This document shows positions 2,579 to 9,620 of a stretch of DNA of 64,000 nucleotides, one piece after another. The notes beneath the pieces are model-generated. The model was given only the letters and a program-made list of their open reading frames with translations, was not told the origin of the DNA and ran no database searches. A program made the position numbers and the translations under genes. The stretch's first letter is position 1. Every line of letters begins with the position of its first letter. The stretch is taken from the sequence record OP889247.1, one strand, 5' to 3'.

Positions 2579-3670
2579 TCATCTTTCTTTTAAATCTAAA
2601 TGAACATTATAGAATTTGTTTCTCCAATAAGGATCTTTTATTTGATTAAGAATAAAAGCAGGATTTAGTTTATAGAAAGTTCTTAATTGAGCTTCTATAA
2701 TAGGATCTTGATATCCCATGTAATCCATATAAGAGAGATATGGTTTCACCCAGTATAAAGCGGCTAGGGTGTAGATCCAACCTAGCTGAATAAACATCTG
2801 GGATTTTCCACAGTTAATGAAAGGTCCTGAGTTATAGTAAAGAGTAGGATGATATTCCATATACTCGGTAAAGCTTCTCAGTCGATCAGACATCAATTTC
2901 TTTTTCTTCCACGTTACATACTTGCTTAAGTCCATGGAGTAGTCTGTAAACGCGAATGGTGGATCTTGAATGACTATTTTATCACCAGCTGTATAATTTA
3001 ACATTACTGTTTCATTATGTACTGGATAATAATCCATCAATACTAAGTAGATAAAGTGTTGAGGAGTCAATCCCACATTGATATTATTACTAACTCTATC
3101 GGTTAAGTAATAGTAATAACTTAGTACTAGTCGATGGACATCTACTTGTATAGCAGAATAGAAGTCTTCTTGACTCTTTCTAATCTCACTGTCTAATAAC
3201 TTAGACAGATCCCAGTATTGAACATTACTGGTAGAGAAGATAGTGGAGAGTATTGGTTGTTCCAATACTTTTTCACGAGAGAGATCATCTATTGTCAACC
3301 CGTACTCATTATCGAACGGAACGACAAAAAGAGTGTGGTGATTGCTTTCAGGAAATACTGTATCAAGGTGATCTTTACCTTTGTTATATAACGAGGTAAG
3401 GTTAACCAAGCTTGCGTATTGCCTACCTTTTAATTCCACCAAATTAAAAAGAGACTCTGATCCTGATACAATGTCAACCGAAAAGTGTTGAAGCAGTTGT
3501 ACTAATGGATGTTGACTAGGAACAACTCGATTACCTAGTTGGAAATACTTCCTATAGTTTTCTCTGTTTCTAGCTATAATACGTTGTAGGTTACCAAGAC
3601 CTCCGTACTGTGGTACTGAGTATTGTAACCCATTGCTCTTTAGTTTGAAATGAGACATATGGTAACTCAA
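2579..3670 (-). CDS. Conserved phiKZ-like hypothetical/virion protein
   Basis: Long ORF convergent on the polymerase and divergent from chimallin; this arrangement is typical of the group. Confidence 0.65.
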   Translation of the reverse strand: MSYHMSHFKLKSNGLQYSVPQYGGLGNLQRIIARNRENYRKYFQLGNRVVPSQHPLVQLLQHFSVDIVSGSESLFNLVELKGRQYASLVNLTSLYNKGKDHLDTVFPESNHHTLFVVPFDNEYGLTIDDLSREKVLEQPILSTIFSTSNVQYWDLSKLLDSEIRKSQEDFYSAIQVDVHRLVLSYYYYLTDRVSNNINVGLTPQHFIYLVLMDYYPVHNETVMLNYTAGDKIVIQDPPFAFTDYSMDLSKYVTWKKKKLMSDRLRSFTEYMEYHPTLYYNSGPFINCGKSQMFIQLGWIYTLAALYWVKPYLSYMDYMGYQDPIIEAQLRTFYKLNPAFILNQIKDPYWRNKFYNVHLDLKER

Positions 3671-3810
3671 CTTAAAAAGATAAGTGATGTAGTATTATAT
3701 GTACAAACATCTAGGTTCATCCTAGATGTTAAAGCGGTAGCTGTACGTCGTATGGAAAATTCTGTCATACGATCAACGTAGGAATGACTAATTTGTGACA
3801 ATTTTTATAG

Positions 3811-3844
3811 TTCTATAATTTTTCAAACCTATATTACCTAAGTG
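3811..3844 (+). promoter_or_regulatory. Early (virion RNAP) promoter of chimallin
   Basis: TTCTATAATTTTTCAAACCTATATTACCTAAGTG contains the phiKZ early motif TATATTAC (3830-3837) and aligns with five other copies. Confidence 0.8.
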
Positions 3845-3924
3845 ATAAGTAAGAGAAGTATTTTCAATTACTTAATTAACCCGCCACTAGTGATTTAAAT
3901 AACTTTTAGCTAAAGGAAATTATC

Positions 3925-5826
3925 ATGCAAGTTAACAACAACGAAAACAACGCTATGAACTCCACCCTGGGTCTGGGCACTTCTTCTAACGGTTCTGGTT
4001 CTCCTCTGGCTGCTCTGTTTGGTAGCACCAACCTGATCACTTCTTCTCACTCTGCTACCGAAGTTGCTGATGTGAGCAAGTACCTGCAAGAGAAAGTTAA
4101 AGAGCTGCTGGCTAACACTGCTCCTGAAATCCAGAAAGCAACTCTGCCGCGTTTCATGCAACAGCTGACCTCTGACATCACTCCGCATCTGCCGGGTATC
4201 GCAATGTACACCGTACTGGGTACTAGCTGCTACGTAATGCCGATCCTGTTCTACAAAGCAGGTATCACCGATGCTACCGATACCATCCAAATGGGTAACG
4301 AAGCTCCGCGTGGCTATGCTAAGACTCCGACTTCCTTCATGACCAATGACGTAATGAAGAAAGTTAAGGAAAGCTTCAAGGTCATCGATGGTAAGACCAT
4401 GACCAACGTCGTGATCACTGCACCGATGGTAATGAACCTGGAGCGTTATATCAAAGCCGGGATCACTGGTGAAGATATGGCTGCTAAAGTTGGTCACAAG
4501 CTGCTCAAAGAGTGGCAGACTGGCATTACCAACATGGCAGCTCTGGAAACTCAGAAAGCTGGTGGTCAACTGCCCAACCCGTTTGCTGGTGGTAAGCTGT
4601 TTGGTCAGCATGAAGCCGCTCTGGCTCGTGTTGAGTCTGTTCATCAACTGGTTGTTGATGGTCTGCCTGTTCCGTATAACCTGGCTGTTAAGCTGGCAAC
4701 TGCCAACAAGAACAACATGACCAACTACGGTAACAACACCGCCAAGACCATCCTGACAACTTACCTGAACGTCCAACTGGAAACTATGTCTCCAGGTCAG
4801 TTCAACGATGTCCGGGCTCGTAACCCTGGTCGTCCTTGCGGTCCGATCGTTCCGGTTGTTGTAGCTGGTATGTCCAACCCTGGTGAAACCCTGCATCACA
4901 ATAACTCCCTGATGACTCAACTGCTTGGTCTGTTCGCAAGTCTGGCAGCTAACGCTCCGGTGTTCTTCTCTGAAGCGTTCCGTGGTCAACAGGTTGGTAA
5001 CCGTGGTAACCTGGGTGTGTTCAACAACTACATGGCTTCTATTCTGGGTCCTGTATATGGTGCTGATCACAACCTCACCAACAAGAACATCACCAACATC
5101 GCAGTAACCAATGACTGGATCCAGCGTTATGTTGCTCCTCAAGCAGTATACGCAATCGATCTGATCGGTTATGTAGATGAAACCAGTAACAACGACTTCT
5201 GGTTCGGTATCACCTCTGGTGACAAGTCCTCTACCTACGTTCGCTCCATGATCTCCCTGTGTGATCTGCTGACCGGTGGTAAGTTCTCTGCCCTGGCTAA
5301 AGAGAACACTGAGAAAGGTGCAAACCGTGACAAGTCCAAAGAGTGGGCGTTTGGTGATGCAATCATGCACCGTACCAACATCATCCGTCCTTACGGTATC
5401 GCCAAGAAAGGTAATGCTTGGTTTGATCTGGGTGAAGTAGATGGCATGTTCCTGCGTCAGCCTGAGTACTACGGTACCAATGAAGTAGCGATCAACGAGT
5501 ACAACGCTCTGCTGCAAGGTAGCATGGGTAACATCGATACTCGTATCCGTCAGTACAACATCCTGAACCGCCTGCAAGCAATGTTCAATAACGATGTGAT
5601 CGTTGAAGGTTGGAGCCTGCGTTATGTATTTAACCAGTCCTTCTTCAACACCCTGGCTCAAGCAATGTCTGCTGCTGGTACTCTGTCTGTATCCGGTAAC
5701 AACGCAGCCGCTAACTGGACCATGCACGTTCAGAACGAAATCCTGAACATGACCATGGGTGCTAGCCTGTCTAACGCGCCGGTCACTCAGAACGTAATGA
5801 ACAACGTGATGTACACCCAGTTCTAA
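3925..5826 (+). CDS. chmA: Chimallin, major phage nuclear shell protein (phiKZ gp54 / 201phi2-1 gp105 family)
   Basis: 633 aa, lying between the DNA polymerase and nvRNAP beta' genes. Has an early promoter, very strong codon bias (CTG/GGT/ACC/AAC) and its own terminator. Confidence 0.88.
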   Translation: MQVNNNENNAMNSTLGLGTSSNGSGSPLAALFGSTNLITSSHSATEVADVSKYLQEKVKELLANTAPEIQKATLPRFMQQLTSDITPHLPGIAMYTVLGTSCYVMPILFYKAGITDATDTIQMGNEAPRGYAKTPTSFMTNDVMKKVKESFKVIDGKTMTNVVITAPMVMNLERYIKAGITGEDMAAKVGHKLLKEWQTGITNMAALETQKAGGQLPNPFAGGKLFGQHEAALARVESVHQLVVDGLPVPYNLAVKLATANKNNMTNYGNNTAKTILTTYLNVQLETMSPGQFNDVRARNPGRPCGPIVPVVVAGMSNPGETLHHNNSLMTQLLGLFASLAANAPVFFSEAFRGQQVGNRGNLGVFNNYMASILGPVYGADHNLTNKNITNIAVTNDWIQRYVAPQAVYAIDLIGYVDETSNNDFWFGITSGDKSSTYVRSMISLCDLLTGGKFSALAKENTEKGANRDKSKEWAFGDAIMHRTNIIRPYGIAKKGNAWFDLGEVDGMFLRQPEYYGTNEVAINEYNALLQGSMGNIDTRIRQYNILNRLQAMFNNDVIVEGWSLRYVFNQSFFNTLAQAMSAAGTLSVSGNNAAANWTMHVQNEILNMTMGASLSNAPVTQNVMNNVMYTQF

Positions 5827-5892: not shown

Positions 5893-5913
5893 ACCTGGAG
5901 GTAATTTTTTCGT

Positions 5914-7308
5914 ATGTCAACTTTAGCGAATGTACTTGAGCAATACCAAATACAACATCTTCTTCCAACCACTCTATTTGATAAAATCATTGGAGAGTCA
6001 GGTTATGTACCAGAAGGTGATGACGAAAGTTTTTATCAACCTCTTTATCCAGATATTGAAGATTTCAATTATCGGCATGATACCACTACAGTTCATCCGA
6101 TCTATCTGAATGATTTCGATTTTAATATAGAAGAAGATCGAGAAAAGATTACTGCTTTGCTACGTACTGAATATGAAGGAAACAATTTCGATACAGTAGC
6201 GAGTTGTACTTGTAAGAAACATCGTACTAATGCGTATCTTGGTACAAGTTTCGTTTGTGACAGTTGTGGAGATCCTGTTACTAAACCACTTGGTGAGAAG
6301 ATCGAAACCAAAGTCTGGCTTCGTACTCCCGCTAACGTGTCAGGGTTTATTAACCCAACTATTGCAGAGGTATTCTTTCGCAAACTCAATACCAAAACCC
6401 CTAAGGTGAATTTGGTTGAGTATTGGATTAACAAAGAGTTTAGAAATGAAAAACGGTTTAGAGACCCAAGTCATAGTGCGTTTAAAATAGCTTGTAAACT
6501 GGAAGCTTTCCGTTTGTCACTCAATATCGAATTTGGATATAACGAGTTCGTTGACAATATGGATTTGATTATCAGATCAGCTATTGAACACGACACTAAT
6601 GGTGTTCTTGATCTTACCGAAAAGAACCGTGAACATTATGCGATGTTCTGGGAAAAATTCAAATCAAGAGCTGTAGCTCAATATCTCCCTTTGCCTAACA
6701 AGGTAACCTCTATTGTCGAGTCTGACCAACGAGATAAATACGTTAATAAGGAGAAGAGTGATCTTGAAAAGATCTTTTACACCATTGCTGATATGTATCC
6801 GGCTTATGACTATCGTTCTACTGAGAACGCAGAGATCATGGGGAAGATCTTTACTAAACTCAAAAGCATGATGTTGGATGTAACTGAATCTATCCTATTC
6901 AAGAAGAAAGGGATGATTCGTTATCACGCTGGTGCCGGTAAGTTACCGATGACTGGTCGTTCTATCATCACAGGCGAATCTGGTGTTTGTCGGTCAGACA
7001 CTATTATTGTTCCCTGGTTGTACGGAATTACGTGTCTGGATAAACACCTAACCAACTGGTTGTATCGTAAAGGCTACACTCCACTAAAAGTAAAGGAGAT
7101 TATCCGCTCAGCTGCTAACTTTAAACATCCTGTTGTAGAGGAGTTCTTTAACTGGGTAGAAAGTAATCGATACGCTATTGCAACGTGCGGTCGAAATCCC
7201 TCTATTCAGTATTTGTCGGCACGTGGTTTCTTTGTACAATTTAACCGCGATGTAGAAGATAAATCCATCCGGATTCCGATTACTACAGTTAAGGAATTTA
7301 ATGCCGAT
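5914..7308 (+). CDS. Non-virion RNA polymerase beta' N-terminal subunit, exon 1 (phiKZ gp55-like)
   Basis: Zn-finger CTC..CDSC, then GKLPMTGRSII and GRNPSI, ending KEFNAD at T7308. This is the first half of the NADFDGD catalytic motif. Confidence 0.9.
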
Positions 7309-8776
7309 AAACACACTAACACTCACCACTGCCAAAGGTGAGAATGAAACTACTCAGAAATTTAATAAAATCCATTAGACTTTATTATCCCGGTTATAGA
7401 AAGATAATAGGTCTTCCTGGATTAATACATCCTATTTTGGATATAGTGTATGAATTAAAGGTATTAGCCCCTGGGTTGATTGTCCCTATCGAAGTCCCAT
7501 TGCAAAAGGGTCAGTATGTCGGTGTTACAATAGCCGGTTCAAACCACCATTTACATAGATTAAAGGCTGAACGGTTTTTACCAAAACCGATTGGAGTTAA
7601 AGACAAATTAATTATCAATCATAAAGACGGTAAAAAGGCCAACAATTCAATAGAAAACTACGAATGGGTTAGTTATTCTGATAATATTGTTCATGCTTAT
7701 AAATCTGGGCTTAGAAGTGACAACATCTCAGGAACAATGTATGACCTTATAAATCTCACTACTTACGATTTTTATTCGTATGCTGACCTATCTAGACATT
7801 TAAAAGTCAACCCTAGCTATGTGACGTATTACATGAAACGTCCGCGCGATTACCCGTTTAGACGAAGATATGTGATAGTCCCAACTGGTAGTGAAAAACC
7901 CAACATAACTAAGGATGATATTTGGAAATCCAATGAAAATTTTGGAAATCCAATAAGCGTTCTGGATACGGTTACCAATGAAATTACCAAATTTGGTAAT
8001 TTTGCTAGCATGGTGAAAACTCTAGGTCTTAAATACCACCAAAGAGAAAAGTTCTTTCCTGGAAAGGAGTATGTTTTCGGTAACGGAAGACATATAGTAA
8101 CATTAATGACCGAGTATAACGAAATCATATCAACACTTAATTCAGACCCTAACTTTTCTACCCGTGATTATAGTCATTTAAACTATAAGAAGGAAAGAAA
8201 TAAAGTTAAAGTGTCTTACCCAAACGGTGATGTGAAAATATTCAAAAATGTTGAAGTGGCGGCTAGAGAGTTAGGAAGCACAGACGCCGCTTTATCAAAA
8301 AGAATACATTCGTTCAAAGGTCTTTGGAAAGGACATGTATTAACTTATATCTGAGTGTTAGTGTAATAGTCCCCCTAGGGTGAAAGTCCTAGTGAGGTAC
8401 CTTTTGAATTGCTGGAAAGTCCACAAAAGTTACTTACCTAAGCTTAATTAGAAATGATTAAGTTAATGGTGTCGAAAGACAGAAACAACAAGTAACCTGT
8501 CCTATGCTAAAAAATAATGCTAAGGGATATTAACAAGGGATAATCAGCCTCCGAGAATCTAAGTATATTCGTGATGAATAGATACGATTCAGGTTCAACG
8601 ACTGTCCCGTGGCTGGGAGTAGGGAAATCAGATTTCCTGAAGTATTAGGCACCTAACCGTGTAAAGACGTAGGTGATGGTATAGTCTGCTCCTCTAGTAA
8701 TGTAGAGGCGGGTGTCTTAGCACACCGGCGTTATTATGATAGCCAAATGGCGAACGGTAATAACGTGGACATAAGG
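7309..8776 (+). mobile_element. Group I self-splicing intron (1468 nt) with HNH homing endonuclease
   Basis: Preceded by U (7308) and ends in G (8776). Core elements: P AATTGCTGGAAA (~8407), Q AATCAGC (~8542), R GTTCAACGACTG (~8593), S TATAGTC (~8680). Removal restores in-frame NAD|FDGD. Confidence 0.9.
7338..8354 (+). CDS. Intron-encoded HNH homing endonuclease
   Basis: HRL..AERF...NHKDGKKANNSIENYEWVSYSDNIVHA HNH motif, followed by NUMOD/IENR-like DNA-binding segments; located inside the intron. Confidence 0.88.
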   Translation: MRMKLLRNLIKSIRLYYPGYRKIIGLPGLIHPILDIVYELKVLAPGLIVPIEVPLQKGQYVGVTIAGSNHHLHRLKAERFLPKPIGVKDKLIINHKDGKKANNSIENYEWVSYSDNIVHAYKSGLRSDNISGTMYDLINLTTYDFYSYADLSRHLKVNPSYVTYYMKRPRDYPFRRRYVIVPTGSEKPNITKDDIWKSNENFGNPISVLDTVTNEITKFGNFASMVKTLGLKYHQREKFFPGKEYVFGNGRHIVTLMTEYNEIISTLNSDPNFSTRDYSHLNYKKERNKVKVSYPNGDVKIFKNVEVAARELGSTDAALSKRIHSFKGLWKGHVLTYI

Positions 8777-8971
8777 TTCGATGGTGATAACATGTATCTA
8801 TTCTTTATCCCAGATATGGTGGGTAAAGTAAATGCATATAGTAACTGGGGGCACCATCAAATGGTTGATCCTAACAAGCCGTTTAAAACAAGTAGATTTG
8901 TTGCCGCAACACGGACTAATCTCTTAAATATAAATAGCGTGCTTCTTAATACACCGATTGAGGAGGACTAA
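8777..8971 (+). CDS. nvRNAP beta' N-terminal subunit, exon 2 (phiKZ gp56.1-like)
   Basis: Begins FDGDNMYLFF directly after the intron's terminal G and completes the DFDGD Mg-binding motif. Confidence 0.88.
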   Translation, partial: FDGDNMYLFFIPDMVGKVNAYSNWGHHQMVDPNKPFKTSRFVAATRTNLLNINSVLLNTPIEED

Positions 8972-9620
8972 TTTGAACGTAACATCAGCTTTCAATAGAG
9001 GTTGTGGTGGAAGCTTGAGTAGTGAAGCTGCTCAGGTCTACGATAACTTCGTAGGAAATATGTTACAGAAATACGATAACTTAACTGGATGGTTGAGTGA
9101 AACTGTAGATTCTGTAAAGAAAGCTCATAGTAACTTTATGTCTTCTAAGATGTGGGAGTTCTCTAACCGTATTGGTAGAACAGGACACTACGTAGGAAGA
9201 TTCGAAATCGGTTATCTGTCGGAAGTTCAATTCCAACAACAAGCCACTGGGTTTATGCGTAATTACATTATGGCTAACCCTAACATGATGGCGTTGTATG
9301 AAACTGAACAAGTCTCTGGATATGATGGAGATTTCTCTGACCTGTGTTCTGGTATCGGTCATGGTAATTATTACTATGATAAAGCTATGGATGGGTTGGT
9401 TACTCAAAATGAGAGTGATCAATACTTCTATCGCACTTACCATAATTCAATGGACGAAGGTACACACCTAAGTCCTAGAGAACGCTTCGATATTCAACGT
9501 ACTTGGCGTGCAACCGATCACCATATTAAGAACTTGTTTGACTCGTCAAACATTGCGGGTGGAAACATTCTTACCTTGGAAGAAGTTGAAGAACGTCGTA
9601 AAGCAGAAGACAAAGAGTAA
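8958..9620 (+). CDS. Conserved phiKZ-like hypothetical protein
   Basis: 220-aa ORF overlapping the end of exon 2, followed by a terminator. Confidence 0.7.
   Translation: MRRTNLNVTSAFNRGCGGSLSSEAAQVYDNFVGNMLQKYDNLTGWLSETVDSVKKAHSNFMSSKMWEFSNRIGRTGHYVGRFEIGYLSEVQFQQQATGFMRNYIMANPNMMALYETEQVSGYDGDFSDLCSGIGHGNYYYDKAMDGLVTQNESDQYFYRTYHNSMDEGTHLSPRERFDIQRTWRATDHHIKNLFDSSNIAGGNILTLEEVEERRKAEDKE

Follow-up and report, generated by a model that had tools for sequence, protein, structure and literature searches.

A group I intron, probably mobile and carrying an HNH nuclease gene, between the NAD and FDGD codons of the non-virion RNA polymerase gene of Aeromonas phage AVP1

The stretch of DNA analysed here (the window; 64,000 nucleotides, record OP889247.1) belongs to Aeromonas phage AVP1, genus Ferozepurvirus, to which positions 5900–9000 show 100% identity, and its coordinates convert to those of the record by adding 170,448. 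Within it, a gene for the beta' N-terminal subunit of the non-virion RNA polymerase (5914–8971; record 176362–179419) is divided into exon 1 (5914–7308), which comprises 465 codons ending ...KEFNAD, and exon 2 (8777–8971), which comprises 64 codons plus a stop and starts FDGDNMYLFFIPDM. Between the two lies a 1,468-nt element (7309–8776) that we assign as a group I intron, based on a match to Rfam RF00028, covariation, the contiguity of profile matches across the exons, and intron-less homologues. The intron contains an HNH homing-endonuclease gene (7344–8354; 336 codons plus a stop), placed in the loop of its P1 helix. Directly upstream of the polymerase gene is the gene for chimallin, the nuclear shell protein (3925–5826), which matches PHROG 4795, annotated 'nuclear shell protein', with an E value of 1.1e-95; because of this gene, AVP1 can be recognized as a phiKZ-like, nucleus-forming jumbo phage. 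The order of shell gene and RNA polymerase gene is shared between the two phages, AVP1 chimallin and exon 1 corresponding to phiKZ gp54 (shell) and gp55. All of these features lie on the plus strand.

The two exons were used as separate queries in profile and PDB searches. Exon 1 matched positions 2–418 of PHROG 2987 ('RNA polymerase beta subunit', 478 positions; E 2e-115), and exon 2 matched positions 419–477 of the same profile (E 4e-9), such that the two matches abut exactly (418|419). Residues 29–465 of the exon 1 query also matched chain A of PDB entry 7OGP (E 1.2e-31), named by its depositors 'PHIKZ055 | ... PHIKZ056.1', a name that denotes the phiKZ non-virion polymerase beta' N-terminal subunit in its spliced form. 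Placement came from the PHROG and PDB searches, Pfam giving zero matches to either exon; against the PDB, exon 2, which is too short a query, returned a chance match only. The assignment to the non-virion polymerase follows from the PHROG 2987 and 7OGP matches together with the presence of chimallin upstream in both phages, and on sequence criteria phiKZ gp55, that same beta' N-terminal subunit, has its orthologue in AVP1 exon 1. An initial annotation of this DNA had named the same host gene.

In GenBank the gene is filed as AVP1_0185, AVP1_0186 and AVP1_0187, the first and last of which are described as hypothetical proteins. AVP1_0187 is annotated from the ATG at 8792, which leaves the FDGD codons outside every annotated gene. 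Comparable mis-annotation is found in ACP1, PS1, PS2, pAEv1810, CF8, D3 and Miami; recognizing the intron allows the complete catalytic subunit of an essential polymerase to be recovered in annotation.

Turning to the boundaries of the intron, the open reading frame (ORF) of exon 1 runs in frame from 5914 to the GAT at 7306–7308, continues for 10 unrelated codons and ends at the UGA at 7339–7341. The initial annotation had exon 1 ending TTT AAT GCC GAT (T7308) and exon 2 starting TTC GAT GGT GAT (8777), a reading that proved correct to the base, and its placement of the junction within the polymerase motif as NAD|FDGD agrees with both the adjacent PHROG 2987 matches and the intron-less homologues. 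The latter read ...(G/N)ADFDGD... without interruption in eight relatives, comprising Aeromonas phage AhC3_1 and seven IMG/VR contigs (65–69% protein identity; OBP and pEt-SU among them). Because the junction must keep D-F, 7308/8777 is the only possible splice-site pair. Excision at these positions is predicted to keep the polymerase frame, as judged from the contiguous profile positions and the continuous homologues, and would give a spliced RNA reading ...AATGCCGAT|TTCGATGGT... and a junction-spanning peptide ...EFNADFDGDNMY... The terminal bases expected of a group I intron, U7308 at the end of the 5' exon and the omega G (G8776) as the last base of the intron, are both in the sequence as originally noted, and the ending ...AAGG| is kept in five of five close copies. 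Below, NAD|FDGD is referred to as site A, and the further positions at which relatives carry introns as site B (NADFDG|D), site C (N|ADFDGD) and site D (NA|DFDGD).

The RNA itself was recognized by the RF00028 model, which matched 8347–8707 over its full length (model positions 1–253; 49.9 bits; E 5e-11 with 3 kb searched). Over the entire 64-kb window the same match had an E value of 1.1e-9 and was the sole one, and the public AVP1 record scanned with RF00028 likewise gave a single match, the intron at 7309–8776. Profile, covariation and comparative evidence together bear out the group I claim of the initial annotation. From the sequence evidence we consider it highly likely that 7309–8776, with precisely these ends, is an intron that splices, and we classify it as a group I intron, subgroup IA-like and probably mobile, within the beta' N-terminal gene.

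The fold was examined in an alignment of five close site-A copies (AVP1, ACP1, PS1, ZPAH34 and CF8). The RNAalifold consensus mispaired the strands of P7, a pseudoknot that it cannot represent, and the structure was therefore drawn by hand and its pairs then counted. Across the five phages, 98.3% of cells in the 105 pairs of this structure form standard pairs. Compensatory changes on both sides occur at 19 of the 105 pairs, against 0–1 when the partners are slid by 1–3 columns, and the observed covariation was equalled in 0 of 500 shuffles.

Following P1, the hand-drawn fold comprises the P2 hairpin (8375–8392), which has a GAAA tetraloop and seven pairs that are 100% paired, and the 5' strand of P3 (8397–8402), which pairs with 8647–8652 and includes one compensatory pair. 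The region 8411–8548 holds P4 (8411–8415/8544–8548), P5 (8419–8422/8538–8541) and an extension of P5 (8429–8529) bearing two GAAA tetraloops; P5 and its extension account for seven compensatory pairs, and P6/P6a (8551–8593) for a further two. The P7 pairing given in the initial annotation, GACUGU (8600–8605) with AUAGUC (8681–8686), forms six pairs across P3 as a pseudoknot; it is 100% paired, and its one G·U becomes A–U in the ZPAH34/CF8 clade. Between P7 and the 3' strand of P3 stand P7.1 (8606–8608/8615–8617), which is invariant, and P7.2 (8622–8628/8632–8638), which has three compensatory pairs; this 8606–8638 segment looks like the mark of subgroup IA. P8 (8653–8672) is followed by P9 (8691–8708), P9.1 (8711–8726) and P9.2 (8729–8765), which together (8691–8765) contribute six compensatory pairs; one compensatory pair, in P9.2, is due to PS1 by itself. 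The P/Q/R/S core elements that had been proposed could also be located, namely an R-like GTTCAACGACTGT, an S-like GATGGTATAGTCT, and P/Q strands AATTGCTGG and TCAGC (in P4).

P1 joins the intron to its exon. The exon GAU (7306–7308) pairs with the internal guide sequence GUC (8370–8372) through G7306–C8372, A7307–U8371 and the splice-site wobble U7308·G8370. The helix is extended by 13 bp, the 5' strand of the extension (7313–7325) being the exact complement of 8353–8365, and closes the loop that carries the HNH gene; the 3' strand of the extension and the guide together occupy 8353–8372, as read from the sequence. The extension is kept in ZPAH34 and CF8 via two compensatory changes, A–U to G–C and C–G to U–A. 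The guide is GUC in all six site-A introns (AVP1, ACP1, PS1, ZPAH34, CF8 and PDCC-1), where it pairs with exon GAU, and it is GGC, in keeping with the exon end GCU, in the homologous introns that EL and phiKp_32 carry 3 nt upstream. This comparison of guide with insertion site is the best support for the 3-bp P1. The codon before site A is GAT in six of six occupied alleles and GAC in 13 of 13 alleles read without an intron at sites A, C or D, the pattern expected if the splice site needs a U.

The HNH gene, which the initial annotation had likewise placed within the intron, is an intact ORF starting at the AUG at 7344, also the GenBank start, with an in-frame GUG at 7338. Its product matches Pfam NUMOD1 (28 bits; cut-off 22.8), PHROG 59 (E 1.4e-24) and, by phmmer, I-HmuI (1U3E; E 1.6e-4), the last with the catalytic (D/N)HKDG...NN...N stretch aligned and with a second, weak match to the I-HmuI C-terminal region. 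It is 35% identical to phiKZ gp56 over 141 aa. The closest full-length relatives, EL ORF025 and phiKp_32 0160, are about 30% identical over 85% of the length and are likewise encoded in the P1 loop of a homologous intron in the same gene; the length of the AVP1 ORF matches the homologues of EL, phiKp_32 and phiKZ. We put the chance that the AVP1 nuclease is active in homing or interference at about even.

The start of the HNH gene lies close to the end of the exon-1 frame, whose UGA ends two bases ahead of AUG 7344. The ribosome-binding site of the HNH gene, AAGGUGAG, can pair with CUCACC (7322–7327), which has four bases in common with the P1 extension strand, and such a hairpin might couple translation of the nuclease to unspliced RNA. 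The hairpin (7322–7327/7337–7342) has a dG of -8.3 and a z of -1.7, and 10 of 200 shuffles fold equally well, which is too weak for a claim of regulation. EL has a similar hairpin across its HNH ribosome-binding site, and phiKp_32 has no obvious one.

Sequence comparison shows here what the intron is and where it ends, that its fold is conserved, that the nuclease gene is intact, and that relatives represent each stage of a homing cycle; the splicing chemistry, nicking and homing we infer. In the proposed scheme, the transcribed RNA would fold and free guanosine would attack after U7308, held in the 3-bp P1 formed by exon GAU and guide GUC and extended by the 13-bp helix. The exons would then be joined after G8776, which would recreate the NADFDGD loop that binds the catalytic magnesium; without splicing there would be no middle or late phage polymerase. 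As for mobility, by analogy with I-HmuI and PhiPA3 gp210 the HNH product would introduce a nick into the intron-less allele brought by a co-infecting relative, and repair would then copy in the intron plus the GAT codon that the intron needs. The pAEv1810 allele AATGCTGACTTTGACGGT, empty at site A, is a natural candidate substrate.

Several findings count against a splicing and mobile intron. The RF00028 score of AVP1 is 0.1 bit below the curated gathering threshold (50 bits), a threshold that the orthologous ZPAH34 intron passes at 59.6 bits. The sample behind the covariation amounts to about two lineages (Ferozepurvirus and Chaoshanvirus), within the AVP1 clade P3 contains an A·C mismatch, just 3 bp of P1 involve the exon, and P10 could amount to no more than 1 bp. 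The score of the HNH ORF against Pfam HNH_3, 24.5 bits, is just below the 24.8 cut-off. Four public runs, three of them metatranscriptomes and the fourth an RNA-type library from wastewater, were aligned to 6800–9300, and they contained unspliced forms and a gene-less allele only, with no joint from 7308 to 8777; all four consist of contigs, which drop rare forms, so that the absence of the joint neither supports nor refutes splicing. The joints that were seen link 8368 to 7308 (64 other letters intervening) and to 7286, and correspond to the gene-less allele known from ACP1 and PS1. For phiKZ, the existence of introns in the RNA polymerase genes has been stated (PMC11512511; PMC10914365), and one long-read study recorded zero spliced reads for them (PMC10914365); the phiKZ polymerase structure was nonetheless solved with a joined gp55 and gp56.1 chain (7OGP).

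Could the gene be truly split, with no splicing at all? Its products, one of 475 aa with the ending ...NADKHTNTHHCQR and a small one initiated internally near 8747 or 8792, would then assemble non-covalently. The three separate GenBank proteins agree with this arrangement, as does the ATG at 8747, which opens a 74-codon frame including FDGD, and jumbo-phage polymerases are already divided into several subunits (PMC7598289). The break, however, would land within the very loop that binds magnesium; relatives do not conserve the in-frame upstream ATG, and in ZPAH34 and CF8 the annotated gene begins after FDGD; the group I fold of the intervening RNA is kept by the 19 compensatory changes; relatives have the break at any of four positions, and the guide sequence matches in each case; and intron-less relatives are continuous. 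We consider a split gene highly improbable. Removal of the insert at the protein level as an intein, or its skipping by the ribosome, can be set aside with still greater assurance, the likelihood being negligible: it has in its favour nothing beyond the active-site position, which inteins also prefer, whereas the exon-1 frame meets a stop, UGA 7339–7341, after entering the insert by 11 codons, the HNH ORF has its own start codon, Pfam finds zero intein motifs, and the 3' 430 nt are non-coding structured RNA. Intein and ribosomal bypass were rejected as candidates because of the stop codons.

A more serious alternative concerns mobility, namely that the intron splices and is inherited only vertically, the HNH protein no longer driving homing because it is inactive, excluded from the nucleus or employed in another role. 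Most relatives (ACP1, PS1, PS2, CF8 and PDCC-1, with a remnant in ZPAH34) have the same intron without the gene, and loss must therefore be common; the slightly sub-threshold HNH_3 score points the same way, and PhiPA3 gp210 is kept out of the phiKZ nucleus (PMC11620839). Set against these points, the ORF has stayed intact across 336 codons, its catalytic motif aligns with that of I-HmuI, and its length equals that of the EL, phiKp_32 and phiKZ homologues. One wastewater library, moreover, contains both an AVP1-like gene-bearing allele (a contig over 7248–7956) and the gene-less allele, as expected of an element still circulating. On balance we hold the loss of homing to be unlikely, though a contender to be reckoned with, and retain a probably mobile intron as the preferred reading.

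The relatives of AVP1 provide examples of each stage of a homing cycle at site A. The site is empty in AhC3_1 and in pAEv1810, whose exons are about 96% identical to those of AVP1 over the last 420 nt, and AVP1 itself has the intron with an intact gene. In ZPAH34 the gene is decayed: 58 nt of its 5' end (52 identical) and 91 nt of its 3' end (77 identical) are kept, the middle, about 900 nt, is gone, and a stop lies inside the remnant. Clean gene-less introns occupy site A in CF8 (439 nt), in the Photobacterium phage PDCC-1 (392 nt), whose exon protein is just 35% identical, and in ACP1, PS1 and PS2 (474 nt), which have a distinct 63-nt P1 loop. Identity to the AVP1 intron core is 98.5% for ACP1 (97–98.5% for ACP1 and PS1 taken together), 81% for ZPAH34 and CF8, and 57–62% for PDCC-1, EL and phiKp_32. 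Among close Aeromonas phages with about 96% identical exons, AVP1 has site A occupied with the gene, pAEv1810 has site B only, and ACP1 and PS1 have both A and B. Phages this similar, differing just in site occupancy and gene presence, form a ready natural system for studying homing, co-conversion and interference, and such tests would concern nucleus-forming phages, in which transcription and translation are separated.

Some observations bear on the history of the loop and of the flanking exons. The P1-loop contents of AVP1 (7309–8366) and of ACP1 and PS1 (loci L002 and L003, 1910–1972) are unrelated despite near-identical cores, and the AVP1 loop with its HNH gene resembles the ZPAH34 remnant (about 85–90% identical). 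Because the likenesses of loop and core disagree, the loop cassette seems to have a history other than that of the ribozyme core. A third P1-loop variant is present in a wastewater RNA library, as a loose end at 7308. In exon 1 of ACP1, a tight patch of nine substitutions (L002 1888–1897, -22 to -13 from the splice site) changes TVKE to TCGA within an otherwise about 95% identical exon, and has the look of a short tract acquired by co-conversion or recombination from a donor further removed.

The NADFDGD codons are occupied at more than site A. Across these seven codons (21 bases), four distinct sites are occupied, and every 5' exon ends in U. Site C is occupied in phiKZ and AerS_266 (as G|ADFDGD in the latter); site D in EL, phiKp_32 and one metagenome contig; site A in AVP1, ACP1, PS1, ZPAH34, CF8 and PDCC-1; and site B in pAEv1810, ACP1, PS1, AerS_266, phiKp_32, HHBS47_1, Miami and D3. 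The sites of these phages were read directly, and other occupancy calls were inferred from tblastn gap sizes. By separate exon-1 and exon-2 tblastn coordinates, this segment lacks an intron in about 22 distinct chimalliviruses and has at least one in a roughly equal number.

Up to two introns occur per gene, separated by internal exons of 9 nt (UUCGACGGU; ACP1 and PS1), 12 nt (phiKp_32) and 15 nt (AerS_266). The doubly occupied loci are those of ACP1 (L002 1910–2771), PS1 (L003 1910–3544), phiKp_32 (L017 1310–3062) and AerS_266 (L015, about 3567–4314). The downstream FDG|D intron of the two-intron relatives has a canonical 6-bp P1, GACGGU with GCCGUC, and the PS1 intron at site B has its own HNH gene at the 3' side.

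One lineage of intron plus HNH gene is found at two sites 3 nt apart, at NA|D in EL (L016 1355–2771) and phiKp_32 (L017 1310–2739) and at NAD|F in AVP1, and the two guides, GGC and GUC, are one base apart. Reverse splicing is one candidate for this 3-nt move. A shift of insertion site with a matching one-base guide change is a rare natural case that bears on the spread of group I introns to new sites. In the collections scanned, few members of the lineage turned up: a pattern scan of IMG/VR with a conserved 34-nt intron block gave three loci, all from known isolates, and the same scan of metagenomes gave one short contig, at site D.

It is conceivable, albeit somewhat doubtful, that rival intron–endonuclease elements compete for the 21 bases of the NADFDGD codons in the non-virion polymerase gene of chimalliviruses, using them as a landing strip. 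If so, introns would relocate by retargeting of the ribozyme, as in the reverse-splicing model; one occupied site would protect against, or compete with, the endonuclease of a neighbouring site; and the AVP1 HNH protein would be a means by which phages that share a phage nucleus interfere with one another. The papers searched contain no description of Aeromonas-phage introns or of several insertion sites clustered at NADFDGD; added here is the occupation of four sites in these codons, with up to two occupied per gene.

The AVP1 intron is a known kind of element, since phiKZ already has an intron in the orthologous gene and motif. The initial annotation had pointed to comparable introns in phiKZ, and the parallel is as close as the orthologous gene itself (gp55, gp56 HNH and gp56.1). 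In both phages the gene lies beside chimallin, the intron lies inside the NADFDGD codons, the HNH gene stands directly after the 5' splice site, and the HNH proteins are homologous. The phiKZ intron differs in being 1,372 nt long, in its position at N|ADFDGD, 6 nt upstream of the AVP1 site, and in having a 6-bp P1 (CCUAAU with GUUGGG) where AVP1 has 3 bp. The phiKZ motif is numbered 417-DFDGD-421 (PMC8287921), which fits the phiKZ junction N415|A416. The two phages are not close in DNA, as megablast of the AVP1 gene region matched Aeromonas phage records only.

A further likeness is provided by EL (ORF025) and phiKp_32 (0160), in which the same gene is interrupted, the HNH gene lies in the P1 loop, and a 3-bp exon P1 is closed by a long helix. 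Their RNA core is clearly homologous to that of AVP1, with 57–62% identity and long shared blocks, whereas their insertion point is NA|DFDGD, 3 nt upstream, with guide GGC and exon GCU in place of GUC and GAU.

That an intron nuclease can harm a relative in the same infected cell has its experimental precedent in PhiPA3 gp210 (Birkholz et al. 2024, PMC11620839). As in AVP1, the PhiPA3 intron is of group I and encodes an HNH nicking endonuclease resembling I-HmuI; it is placed at conserved aspartate codons of the catalytic region of a chimallivirus RNA polymerase gene. The interrupted gene is, however, that of the virion polymerase beta subunit (gp211/209), a different gene of a different polymerase. 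The parallel drawn in the initial annotation thus holds as a functional analogy, and not for the gene or for the site, which is non-homologous (PMC11620839). A role as a 'weaponised' endonuclease of the gp210 type may be suggested for the AVP1 HNH protein by analogy only. I-HmuI, a nicking enzyme considered here with the DNA polymerase introns of the Bacillus phages SPO1 and SP82, shares with the AVP1 protein the HNH fold and motif and a setting in a subgroup IA-type intron of an essential phage polymerase gene. It differs in host gene and phage group and in size, with 174 aa against 336 aa in AVP1, whose protein has extra NUMOD-type DNA-binding repeats.

Two further observations concern relatives. 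In PS1 (MN032614.2), a third and weaker RF00028 match lies at 224203–224543 (35.5 bits; E 1.9e-8), for which AVP1 gave no counterpart match. Within the genus Ludhianavirus, only D3 (L021) has an FDG|D intron, of about 310 nt, its near relations D6, D9 and LAh10 being intron-less by coordinate gaps; the D3 intron is another recent gain or loss.

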